64,000 nucleotides of DNA from positions 82,600 through 146,599 of the forward strand of contig NIVC01000852.1 in the NCBI GenBank assembly GCA_002269645.1, read 5' to 3'. Shown piece by piece: positions 26,401 to 29,400 of the stretch. Within the stretch, counting starts at the first letter, position 1. Each line of letters begins with the position of its first letter. Position numbers and translations under genes: made by a program. The notes under the pieces are model-generated. The model was given only the letters and a program-made list of their open reading frames with translations. It ran no database searches and was not told the DNA's origin. Origin of the DNA: Macrostomum lignano (lineage: Eukaryota).

Positions 26401-29400
26401 GGCGTAAATTATGGTAAAAATTCCTTTCAGGACAAGATTGACTTGCGGCTCGTAAACTCTAGGCGAGAGATGTTTAATTAGCAATGTCTCTTGCTACTTT
26501 GTGAGCTGTTGTACTCTGAGCACACAAGCTGGGCAAACACAAACAATCATAATGGCTTGCCAATGGAAAGCTACTGACATGATTTCTCTTGAAGTCCTGA
26601 GTAATTGAGTGGGAGCATGAGAAACTTTGTTCAAGTTATTGTTACATTGCAGGCTGCCGAAAAATGAATCATAAGTAAACCATCTACTCACAGAAAAGGA
26701 TTGTTTGCCCTTTGGTCGAACTTGCATAAGAGAAGAAGTACTGTAGCAGTACTTCATGGACTCACTTGAGTCCCCAGCTCAAACTCTGACGCGTGCCGCT
26801 CCTTGTACCGGAAAAACGTGCCGCTGTTTTGTGCATAGATGCCGATCTCCCGACCGCTCCATGAGACAACCGAGCCAGCTCAATCGCATACTCTCAGCTT
26901 CATCAGCTCACATAGCAACAGACTCAGAGTCAAGCATGAAGTGGCAGCTCGCTCTCGGACTTCTGCTCTGCGCGGCTCTGGCCGCCGCCGTGCCCAGCCA
27001 GCAGGAGGAGGCCGAGACCACCTCGGCTCTGGAGGCCGTGGCCAACCTGGAAGAGTCCGGCCTGACGGAGGAGGGCTTCCAGCAGCTGGCCAAGAAGGGC
27101 ATCCGCATCAGGAAGGTGGTCCGCGTCATCAGGAACATCAAGAAGGTCGCCCACGCCATCGCCAACTGAAGATCTACAAGACAATGAATGACACAACGGA
27201 CCAGACTTTACTAGCTTTCCAACGATTTTCAAAAGGCCTAAAAAGCGCTATGTAATATGATAATATAAAGTTCTAATACCATCTGGAATTTGTCAACTAA
27301 GTACTCTAAAATACACGCGTAACAGGATCCTTCATTTATTAACATTTTTACTATCAATGTGTTGACTAATTTAACAAAAACCAGCGTACAGTCCTGTATA
27401 TGAGCAAAAACCGAGTGTGTTCGTATATAGTCTATAGCGGATCGTCTGTCTTAGCTTAGCATGCCATTTTGATCTCGACTTTAGCAGGAGTGACTTCAAT
27501 TTCGGCAAGTCCACGGATGAAAAATTCTTAACCTATCGGCAGCAGTTTGTCTTTGGCCATCAGTTGAAACATTATTAACCTATCGGCAATTTGTCTATGG
27601 GCATCAGTTGAAACATTATTAACCTATCGGCAATTTGTCTATGGGCATCAGTTGAAACATTATTAACCTATCGGCAATTTGTCTATGGGCATCAGTTGAA
27701 ACATTATTAACCTATCGGCAATTTGTCTATGGGCATCAGTTGAAACATTATTAACCTATCGGCAATTTGTCTATGGGCATCAGTTGAAACATTATTAACC
27801 TATCGGCAGTTTGTCTATGGGCATCAGTTGAAACATTATTAACCTATCGGCAATTTGTCTATGGGCATCAGTTGAAACATTATTAACCTATCGGCAATTT
27901 GTCTATGGGCATCAGTTGAAACATTATTAACCTATCGGCAATTTGTCTATGGGCATCAGTTGAAACATTATTAACCTATCGGCAGTTTGTCTATGGGCAT
28001 CAGTTGAAACATTATTAACCTATCGGCAATTTGTCTATGGCCATCAGTTGAAACATTATTAACCTATCGGCAGTTTGTCTATGGGCATCAGTTGAAACAT
28101 TATTAACCTATCGGCAGTTTGTCTATGGCCATCAGCTGAAGCGTGTGCATTAAACTTTGGCGACACAAGTGAACACTGATGCCGAACAGCGTATGTCTGA
28201 GCAGCGAGCGATAACATTCAAATCTATTACTTCTCATGCTGCGTTTCATTTATGTGTGTACAGAAGTTCAGCCTAATATTTTAACTTTAAACTTTGAAAT
28301 TTATTTACAGTTAGCTAAGTTTAACAGTCATTTTTTCAACTTTTTTAATCCGTACTTTGTTAAAGTGCAATGAATTCAAACGTCAGTTTAACTTGAAAGG
28401 GATCTTAACTCTCATTCCTAGATAAACCTTGAATATTCACAGTTTAACTTGGAATTTAACCAGGAATCGGCTTGAATTTTTTAAGCGGGATATCGCTGCA
28501 GGATCGAGAACGCAGTGACAGGGAGACTGTTTTATGTTTTATCTTCAATTCAAACCAGAGCGGTGTGAATATGCAATGAATTATATACCAAGGACGACTT
28601 AAGTAGAAGGACGGGAAACCTCGTTTCTTAGAATTTTTTTGAAGGCACTTTTTTCCGAAAAAATACACTGCGGAGATAGGAAATTTTCATTTTTTCAGCA
28701 CAAAAATTGCTATAACTTTTGATAGGAGGCAGATCCAGTGTTGATCTTTTGATATGTTGTGCCTTTTTTATTGCTCTATCGATATTTATAAAGCTTTCCG
28801 TTCAGAAAATTAGGATTCTATGTTAATTTTTTATTCTACGTATATTTTCATGTGTCTTGTGCTTGAAATACATTAGAATGCCACGGCTTGGCTCTTTGAT
28901 TTTATGAGTCTATTTTATCCTTCTTACCTGACTGTATAGCAAATAGTCGTAACATAGATGATAAAATAGATTCATAAAACCAAATATTGGAGCTGTGTCA
29001 TGCCTTTTTGTGATTTTTAGATGCAGGAAATATACGTAGAATAAAAAATTAACATAGAATCCTAATTTTCTGAACGGAAAGCTTTATAAATATCGATAGA
29101 GCAATAAAAAAGGCACAACATATCAAAAGATCAACACTGGATCTGCCTCCTATCAAAAGTTATAGCAATTTTTGTGCTGAAAAAATGAAAATTTCCTATC
29201 TCCGCAGTGTATTTTTTCGGGAAAAAGTGCCTTCAAAAATTTTCTAAGAAACGAGGTTTCCCGTCCTTCTACTTAAGTCGTCCTTGTTATATACATGCAG
29301 GATTCTTCTGGTTGAGAGTCAGACCAAAATTTCACGCAGTTAGATCTACTTTATTCTTTAGTTTATTTGGTCGGCCTCGAACCATCCACCATCAACATTA

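Follow-up and report, generated by a model that had tools for sequence, protein, structure and literature searches.

A Macrostomum lignano locus holds one intact member of a new family of secreted cationic peptide precursors, found so far only in Macrostomum and plausibly antimicrobial

What is made by a short, intronless gene for a secreted precursor with a cationic tail in a free-living flatworm, and what might the product do? The question is raised by a stretch of 64,000 nucleotides (nt) of Macrostomum lignano DNA (GenBank assembly GCA_002269645.1, contig NIVC01000852.1, positions 82,600 to 146,599 of the forward strand), which we call the window and from whose first letter all window coordinates are counted. 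An earlier note on this DNA had proposed that the reading frame at 26936..27169 belongs to a family of antimicrobial peptide (AMP) genes. We find that this frame is a member of a multigene family whose architecture and membership are solid; the family is new, though its precursor design is a known one, and its single earlier appearance, as a flagged entry in a supplementary table, came without a description. An antimicrobial or cytolytic function is plausible for the family, and we put the probability that its products are membrane-active antimicrobial or host-defence peptides at roughly 55%; an antimicrobial, host-defence or toxin role is what we infer from the sequences.

The frame on the forward strand runs from ATG to TGA in a single exon of 77 codons plus stop, and re-translation reproduced exactly the 77-amino-acid product given earlier. 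Its guanine-plus-cytosine (GC) content is 66%, with 92% at third codon positions (GC3) and 100% GC3 in the part encoding the mature peptide, whereas the 500-nt flanks have 46% and 37% GC. Because its GC3 exceeds the flanks and it belongs to a multigene family with clear homologues, it is no chance frame. The precursor is divided as follows.

26936..26989, forward strand: signal peptide MKWQLALGLLLCAALAAA, near-invariant in the family, with a predicted cut after Ala18 (A-x-A)
26990..27097, forward strand: acidic propiece VPSQQEEAETTSALEAVANLEESGLTEEGFQQLAKK, whose last two residues are the conserved KK processing site (alignments)
27098..27166, forward strand: predicted mature peptide GIRIRKVVRVIRNIKKVAHAIAN, 23 residues, net charge +7, predicted amphipathic helix (hydrophobic moment, AlphaFold2), without an amidation signal
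27167..27169, forward strand: stop codon TGA (translation)

All members of the family carry MKWQLALGLLLCAALA.A.P, an acidic propiece, a conserved KK and then a hypervariable cationic C-terminal peptide. The signal is near-invariant, M(K/R)WQ(L/I/F)(A/V)LGLLLCAALA.A.P in alignments A1 and A2, and the window copy retains all family-invariant residues (M1, W3, Q4, L7, G8, L9, L10, L11, A18 and P20). The signal had previously been taken to end after Pro20; alignment A2 instead favours a cut after the invariant Ala18 (A-x-A, followed by V-P), which is the more likely site. The propiece conforms to the family motif (A/S)L-EA(L/V)-N(L/V)(E/D)ES..(S/T)EE and has a net charge of -6 with the KK pair and -8 without it. 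K54 is invariant and K53 is present in at least 90% of the family alignment. What had been offered as a guess at the cleavage site is therefore strengthened, since the pair is near-invariant and stands exactly where conserved sequence gives way to hypervariable sequence. The features by which we recognise the family are thus found together in the window copy: an MKWQ-type signal, an acidic propiece with KK, and a single-exon gene preceded by the family's upstream element, here with an altered TATA box.

The mature part has the charge and periodicity that had been claimed for it. The last 23 residues, GIRIRKVVRVIRNIKKVAHAIAN, contain seven Lys/Arg and no Asp/Glu, with hydrophobic and basic residues at the positions listed earlier, and they indeed lack a C-terminal Gly. 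Their Eisenberg hydrophobic moment is 0.54 at 100 degrees, with an optimum at 108 degrees, and reaches 0.82 in the best 18-residue window. The same computation on classical helical AMPs yielded 0.28-0.67 over the whole peptide and 0.44-0.89 in their best 18-residue window, and the moment of GIRIRKVVRVIRNIKKVAHAIAN falls within that range. Compared with shuffled peptides of the same composition it has z = 1.8-1.9 (p about 0.04), so that the claim of an amphipathic helix is borne out, though only moderately above chance for this composition. AlphaFold2, run on the family alignment, returned a low-confidence model (mean predicted local distance difference test score, pLDDT, 64) with helices at residues 4-17, 22-41 and 45-76, the last of which contains the predicted mature peptide at a pLDDT of 67-76. 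The window copy combines the signal, the net positive charge and the predicted amphipathic structure that characterise cationic membrane-active AMPs.

Relatives were sought at three levels of sensitivity. A search with the single protein returned 10 proteins, all of them M. lignano entries named 'hypothetical protein BOX15_Mlig...' (44-62% identity, E to 5e-14), a word-index search with a profile of 12 sequences gave 18 matches (E to 3e-37), and a HMMER profile run against 1.84 billion cluster representatives gave 13 matches at E below 1e-3. Those HMMER matches that have a source name are all uncharacterised M. lignano proteins, and the further representatives that were looked up in their clusters are M. 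lignano proteins as well, bar one 929-bp contig from run SRR31628392, which the presence of the family promoter shows to be genomic. As far as the searched collections reach, the family has been found so far only in Macrostomum. Literature searches show no named family matching it, in agreement with the earlier note, and searches with six peptide strings and six gene ids returned no matching papers. The closest M. lignano homologue, BOX15_Mlig024774g1/g2, is identical or nearly so to the gene at one of the loci compared here (L002). It is listed by Irvine et al. 2023 (PMC10414684, S5 File) as SignalP-positive, with one propeptide site and with 100% of AMP predictors positive, which lends the antimicrobial reading independent support. 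The fAMP-LP 142 entry was removed there at the 'Same genome' step for its occurrence in a single genome, and a second family member stands in S5 as 'Ungrouped', with 82% of predictors positive (PMC10414684).

Several database records of family members call for caution. The models of P0001 (propiece duplicated), P0005 and P0032 (antisense or upstream extensions) and P0025 (fusion to an unrelated protein of 570 residues) are artefacts. The UniRef name 'SERPIN domain-containing protein' for the 73-residue P0004 was rejected, its sequence being that of an ordinary family member.

The C-terminal part cannot be aligned across subfamilies and varies from 6 to 34 residues, from alternating forms of 6-9 residues up to helical, Pro/Arg-rich or two-Cys forms of 23-34 residues. 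The following types were distinguished.

Short alternating Arg type: FVRVRVRLG, FVRVRARIRLG, IFRVRVRIG, FVRVHVRFG, WLRVRARVRIG
Short alternating His type: FIHIHFG, GFHVHFHG, FHLHLPGK
Extended form of the Arg type: WLRVRARVRVGSRRRSRSG
Helical type: WRRRRRFRWRKAIRVAGKVAKAVL
Pro/Arg-rich type: FLRVRLPRVRMPRVRLPRVRLPRLRVRFRWSKK
Long Arg/Tyr-rich type: WLLRRIRIRWRRVLRVASRVYRIYRYLPIGK and WFSRWFRITYRRRGGERRYLRSYFRLG
Two-Cys type: WRIKSACKIFRRLLHLARKCYAKKG
Barely charged (+1) type: AVYKPNYYKD

The short alternating peptides have their hydrophobic moment peak at 180 degrees, as in a beta-strand. A C-terminal Gly is present in 23 of the 33 members and Gly-Lys in three more, so that 26 of 33 carry the usual amidation signals. 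The window peptide, the peptide of a frameshifted copy in the same window and the M. lignano peptide ending in ...IRVAGKVAKAVL share the tail ..(I/V)...(K/G)K(V/I)A.A. and by this likeness are assigned to a helical subgroup; GIRIRKVVRVIRNIKKVAHAIAN can be aligned to the terminal ...IRVAGKVAKAVL of the fAMP-LP 142 peptide from M. lignano. The description of a linear alpha-helical family accordingly holds for the window copy and its subgroup, but not for most relatives, which are alternating hydrophobic/Arg/His peptides of 6-10 residues, nor for the Pro/Arg-rich and two-Cys forms.

One subfamily and one single member deserve separate mention. His-type peptides are encoded at L006 (13065-13253) and L007 (6958-7140 and 10052-10234) and by proteins P0016, P0020 and P0027-P0034; their products FIHIHF-G, GFHVHFH-G and FHLHLP-GK are neutral at pH 7 and do not fit an ordinary AMP profile. 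The short alternating His (and Arg) peptides resemble designed heptapeptides that bind Zn and self-assemble. The Pro/Arg-rich repeat peptide FLRVRLPRVRMPRVRLPRVRLPRLRVRFRWSKK has a charge of +14 and belongs to protein P0017, encoded at 541-813 of locus L003 (the SRR31628392 contig); it recalls proline-rich AMPs that act inside bacteria.

The three parts of the precursor have diverged to different degrees. Pooled Nei-Gojobori ratios of nonsynonymous to synonymous differences (pN/pS) over 14 distinct coding sequences were 0.42 for the signal, 1.03 for the propiece and 0.96 for the mature part, values that serve for description only, as the pairs are non-independent paralogues and the mature alignments are poor. 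The synonymous difference was also greater in the mature part (0.53 vs 0.28). Descriptively, the signal is conserved while propiece and peptide are fast-evolving. The net charges of propiece and peptide are inversely related, with a Spearman coefficient of -0.75 among 33 sequences and -0.89 among 18 subfamily representatives, a trend that spans subfamilies although its p-values are inflated by the shared ancestry of the paralogues. Propieces of -8 to -10 precede the peptides of +11 to +14, and those of -2 to -7 precede the peptides of 0 to +4. In our reading the family evolves by tandem duplication and birth-and-death.

Family genes of M. lignano are single-exon and lie about 3 kilobases (kb) apart in tandem or inverted arrays, of two genes at L001, an inverted pair at L002, five genes at L006 and two at L007. 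An alignment of 16 upstream regions revealed a conserved CGGAAA(A/C)ACGTGCC about 75-125 nt before the ATG, and the promoters share the pattern GGAAA(A/C)ACGTG-N13-(C/T)ATAAAT, with 23-24 nt from the start of the element to the TATA box in all copies. Exact GGAAAMACGTG was seen nowhere but before family genes, both in 115 kb of M. lignano loci (all 13 occurrences) and in the window (both occurrences); together with the TATA box, the element appears to point to co-regulated members. At the 3' side, 11 of the 14 homologous loci have AATATA at 109-152 nt past the stop. M. lignano gene models derive from RNA sequencing (RNA-seq) (PMC5730564), and the homologues are therefore transcribed. Around the window gene the corresponding features are these.

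26810..26820, forward strand: upstream element GGAAAAACGTG, 126 nt before the ATG (upstream alignment)
26834..26840, forward strand: TATA-like box CATAGAT, 24 nt after the element start, with a putative core-promoter role
26861..26863, forward strand: further ATG at -75, in frame with the gene and near where transcription is predicted to start (alignment)
26880..26935, forward strand: segment tcaatcgca.actctcagcttcatcag... resembling a 5' untranslated region (5'UTR) (blastn and alignment against 37891-37936, 39336-39381 and M. lignano L002)
27262..27267, forward strand: AATATA hexamer, 92 nt after the stop, candidate polyadenylation signal

The earlier note had placed two paralogues within 13 kb of the gene. 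Searches of the window with the locus (tblastn and blastn) did find two further copies, but neither is intact, one being a relic and the other carrying a 1-nt frameshift, so that the window holds one intact and two defective family copies.

37891..38019, forward strand: relic copy, 5'UTR-like sequence fused to ...LAKK-GIRIRKMVRVNRNIKKVAHAMAN-stop (blast)
39284-39294, forward strand: promoter element GGAAAAACGTG of the third copy (upstream alignment)
39307-39313, forward strand: intact CATAAAT box of the third copy (upstream alignment)
39382..39616, forward strand: third copy, starting MKWQLALGFLLCAALAAAAPNQ (MKWQLALGFLLCAALAAAAP..), with TAG at codon 23 (39448-39450) (blast, translation)

In the relic, 46 nt of 5'UTR-like sequence (89% identical) are joined to the last 28 codons and the stop (94%; five differences in 84 nt); it has no ATG, signal, propiece or promoter element, and about 160 nt are missing. 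We read this as a deletion because the missing segment has no GT..AG borders and signal-coding sequence is absent nearby, and a spliced variant was rejected on the same grounds. The third copy has an extra base at or near the CCC run at 39439-39441; after the 1-nt shift it continues through an acidic propiece to ...SDSNQEETENLAAMRAMSDVDASALTGER-GLFGMVIGTAKVVGKIAKAVKAARNS-stop, and AATAAA follows at 39688-39693. It is either a frameshifted pseudogene or a homopolymer assembly error.

With a signal peptide, an acidic propiece matched in charge, a conserved dibasic site and, in many members, amidation signals, the precursor is fully equipped for making a cationic peptide, storing it safely and releasing it, and we see the family as a delivery scaffold for short, strongly cationic peptides. 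Taken together, hypervariable products, tandem birth-and-death, restriction to one genus and the precursor design are the signature of effectors directed against fast-changing targets. Most probably, the peptides would act as antimicrobial or host-defence effectors in the secretions of epithelial or gland cells. The near-invariant signal would direct the precursor to the secretory pathway and be removed after Ala18. The acidic, helical propiece would neutralise the cationic peptide during transport and storage; what the sequences do show is that, throughout the family, the more positive the peptide, the more negative its propiece. A proprotein convertase would then cleave after the conserved KK, and the C-terminal Gly or Gly-Lys would be amidated in most relatives, the window copy being without this signal. 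Once freed, GIRIRKVVRVIRNIKKVAHAIAN (+7) may form an amphipathic helix on anionic membranes and permeabilise them.

Besides the limits already attached to the structural model, the pN/pS values and the charge correlation, several points weigh against this interpretation. The amphipathicity of GIRIRKVVRVIRNIKKVAHAIAN, about 1.9 standard deviations above shuffled peptides, is reasonable and not statistically striking, and relatives of only 6-9 residues are atypical for AMPs. KK is less common as a convertase site than KR or RR, and the processing signals are common to neuropeptide precursors too. In the window copy, the CATAGAT box carries an A>G change relative to the (C/T)ATAAAT of all homologues, and no homologue has an ATG at the position aligned with 26861, which, if transcribed and used, would add 25 residues ahead of the signal peptide. 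The exact 77-residue product is missing from the protein collection searched. For no member did we find published data on microbe killing, permeabilisation, expression site, induction or the peptide itself. Six family gene ids do not occur in the supplements of the papers on M. lignano ageing, on ploidy, on the genome and on RNA-seq in three species, and neither the one gene id nor the signal-peptide strings sought occur in the supplements of the seminal-fluid screen.

The family resembles several known systems in design and, with one exception, differs from them in sequence. Pfam-A searches (E up to 10) returned nothing for the window protein and, for 15 members, no frog-peptide, AMP or otherwise relevant family. 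A weak match of PF22991 (Gag1-like lock domain) to the acidic propiece of 11 of the 15 (best E 1.9e-4) was rejected as compositional. Searches of PDB sequences with both mature peptides (E up to 10) gave no related chain, and with the family profile only two unrelated matches at chance level. Neither the cathelin prodomain of cathelicidins nor the mature-peptide profile of cecropins or of other Pfam-defined AMPs was found.

The closest match in design is that of the frog preprodermaseptins, in which a conserved signal, an acidic spacer, a dibasic site and a hypervariable cationic C-terminal peptide follow in the same order, paralogues are many, the signal is far more conserved than the mature peptide, and amidation through Gly is frequent. 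There is no sequence relationship, however (the frog signal/propeptide family, in so far as Pfam-A includes it, was not matched, and no match came from outside Macrostomum); the Macrostomum site is KK rather than KR, and the Macrostomum scaffold also bears alternating peptides of 6-9 residues. Frog dermaseptin genes have two coding exons, against the single exon of the Macrostomum family. Pleurocidin precursors have the same order of parts as those of piscidin. The analogy drawn earlier thus fits the dermaseptin order but not piscidin, whose precursor, from four exons, consists of signal, mature peptide and C-terminal prodomain (PMC7369796). With piscidins the Macrostomum family shares a short cationic amphipathic helical peptide, a small precursor, a conserved signal and a variable peptide and prodomain (PMC7369796), whereas the order is reversed, with the propiece N-terminal, and homology is absent.

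In evolutionary terms the best analogue is provided by Hydra, where AMP families confined to the genus, such as arminins and periculins, are the rule, their many paralogues being clustered in tandem and their precursors made up of a signal and two portions of strongly opposed charge (PMC10945409). Restriction, clustering and charge design are shared with the Macrostomum family; homology is not, many Hydra AMPs are Cys-patterned where most Macrostomum members are linear, and the Hydra families are functionally validated with known expressing cells. Among flatworms, fAMP-LP 142 is a true homologue, 57% identical overall, with the same signal, propiece motif and boundary and a related helical tail, ...IR...KVA.A...; the peptide predicted for it, FRWRKAIRVAGKVAKAVL, begins behind a run of Arg inside the sequence and not behind the conserved (E/K)K (PMC10414684). 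The trematode helminth defence molecules (HDMs) FhHDM-1 and Sm16 are likewise small secreted proteins with a signal and a C-terminal cathelicidin-like amphipathic helix (PMC3093369, PMC7373315). They differ in being trematode-specific and, reportedly, without antimicrobial and cytotoxic activity (PMC3708846). No trematode protein was among the matches of our single-protein, profile and HMMER searches. We know of no tandem arrays of single-exon HDM genes with hypervariable tails.

Other explanations have to be weighed against an antimicrobial role. Cytolytic, venom-like peptides, secreted by glands of the epidermis or pharynx against prey, competitors or predators, would disrupt membranes in the same physical way, as hymenopteran and spider venom peptides also join a conserved prepro part to a hypervariable cationic tail; the +11 to +14 charges of some relatives, with their compensating propieces, suggest protection of the producer cell, and diversification within tandem arrays is rapid. 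The sequence offers nothing to separate such an offensive or anti-predator use from antimicrobial defence. We nevertheless judge it improbable: members of 6-9 residues are unlikely cytolysins, M. lignano is cultured on diatoms, and no venom apparatus is known to us in Macrostomum. Signalling precursors, from which one amidated neuropeptide or hormone is freed at the dibasic site to act on a receptor, would account for the signal peptide, the conserved KK, the Gly or Gly-Lys ends in 26 of 33 members and the predicted -RFamide, -RLamide and -RIamide termini (such as FVRVHVRF-G and IFRVRVRI-G), which recall the FMRFamide-like peptides of flatworms. Yet receptor ligands are normally the conserved part of their precursors, while here the peptide is the least conserved part, spans 6-34 residues and falls into several unrelated types, and a mature motif conserved among paralogues and species, as in FLP- and NPF-type precursors, was not found. 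Dozens of paralogues in arrays, a single peptide per precursor, charges of +7 to +14 with a compensating propiece, the missing amidation signal of the window copy and the absence of any Pfam neuropeptide match for the window protein and 15 members make this reading very improbable.

Secreted peptides of reproduction (seminal fluid or egg coat, evolving under sexual conflict) or of structure (short alternating peptides assembling into beta-sheet material as a functional amyloid, adhesive or metal binder) are about equally hard to credit. Reproductive genes of Macrostomum, too, typically evolve fast, stay restricted to a lineage and expand in tandem (PMC7336406, PMC5977470), and the short FVRVRVRL, IFRVRVRI, FIHIHF and GFHVHFH show strict alternation, their moments peaking at 180 degrees. 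The helical type, without such alternation, is what the window peptide and its subgroup represent, however; the family is absent from the supplements of the seminal-fluid screen and the three-species RNA-seq study, within the limited coverage of those files, and charge compensation by the propiece points to a product harmful to the cell that makes it. Whatever the family does, the window copy itself may be silent or decaying, a recent pseudogene whose frame is still open. Both neighbouring copies are defective, CATAGAT replaces (C/T)ATAAAT in this copy alone, an in-frame ATG stands at -75, and the product is missing from the protein collection, even though a kinase exon of the window matches M. 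lignano at 93% of aligned residues and the gene models of that species come from transcripts. We regard decay as unlikely, if deserving of some weight, because the frame is open over 77 codons and retains every family-invariant residue, GC3 is 92-100%, and neither the upstream element and its spacing nor the AATATA hexamer is damaged; that the product is not on record counts for little, as another strain, assembly or sibling species may be involved.

The surroundings of the gene were also inspected. Weak Pfam matches to WD40 and EML beta-propeller domains were found in open reading frames (ORFs) at 26195..26398, 31013..31756 and 32578..32865 on the forward strand, and the peptide gene probably occupies an intron of an EML-like gene of the same orientation. 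Two of these EML-like exons are separated by a 775-bp array of (CTTC)n (31801-32575). Further upstream, in a block of 62% GC, an ORF with a DUF4485 match (12979-14025, E 1.5e-18) is followed by Ala/Glu/Arg-rich coiled-coil ORFs at 14572-15645 and 18332-18958 (forward strand); all are probably exons of one large coiled-coil gene. In a protein-kinase exon at 41503..42066 on the reverse strand, 103 of the 111 residues that align with an M. lignano protein are identical (93%); the lower overall identity of 72% goes back to a 33-residue gap in the older gene model of that protein, and the match places the window in M. lignano or a very close relative. An interstitial telomere-like repeat of about 100 bp (AACCCT and ACCCT variants) is present at 22206-22312. 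Tandem Repeats Finder returned 53 rows in the window, many of them arrays of 0.5-2 kb with units of 9-67 bp (for example 211-1610, 5064-6008, 6473-7869, 35229-37132, 40103-41015, 45396-46561, 55587-57599 and 62234-63764). Such arrays create spurious long ORFs, such as one of 696 codons at 35131-37221 on the reverse strand, and a 44-bp x 14 array (27518-28140) begins 350 nt past the peptide gene.

If the antimicrobial or host-defence interpretation is taken further, it is conceivable, though doubtful at present, that these genes form the first gene-encoded AMP superfamily of a free-living flatworm, with one signal-propiece cassette reused for unrelated effectors. Those effectors would, just as tentatively, comprise amphipathic helices, Pro/Arg-rich peptides, a disulphide loop and ultra-short amidated beta-strand Arg/His peptides. 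The ultra-short forms may self-assemble or bind metals. Expression of all of them would depend on a dedicated cis-element, GGAAA(A/C)ACGTG, through which an immune or stress pathway of the flatworm might act.

RNA interference is in use in M. lignano. Transgenesis is established there as well (PMC5730564), and this experimentally tractable worm belongs to a group in which the AMP repertoire is an acknowledged gap; flatworms are reported to lack the classical lophotrochozoan AMP groups (PMC10414684). Even if the peptides are not antimicrobial, they would still be a large unexplained group of secreted peptides. If they are active, they would add a further lineage-restricted, fast-evolving AMP arsenal built on a conserved prepro cassette, like those of Hydra and frogs, and would offer a natural library of very short cationic peptides. 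M. lignano itself would gain defined immune effectors and, with them, a candidate immune-responsive promoter element.

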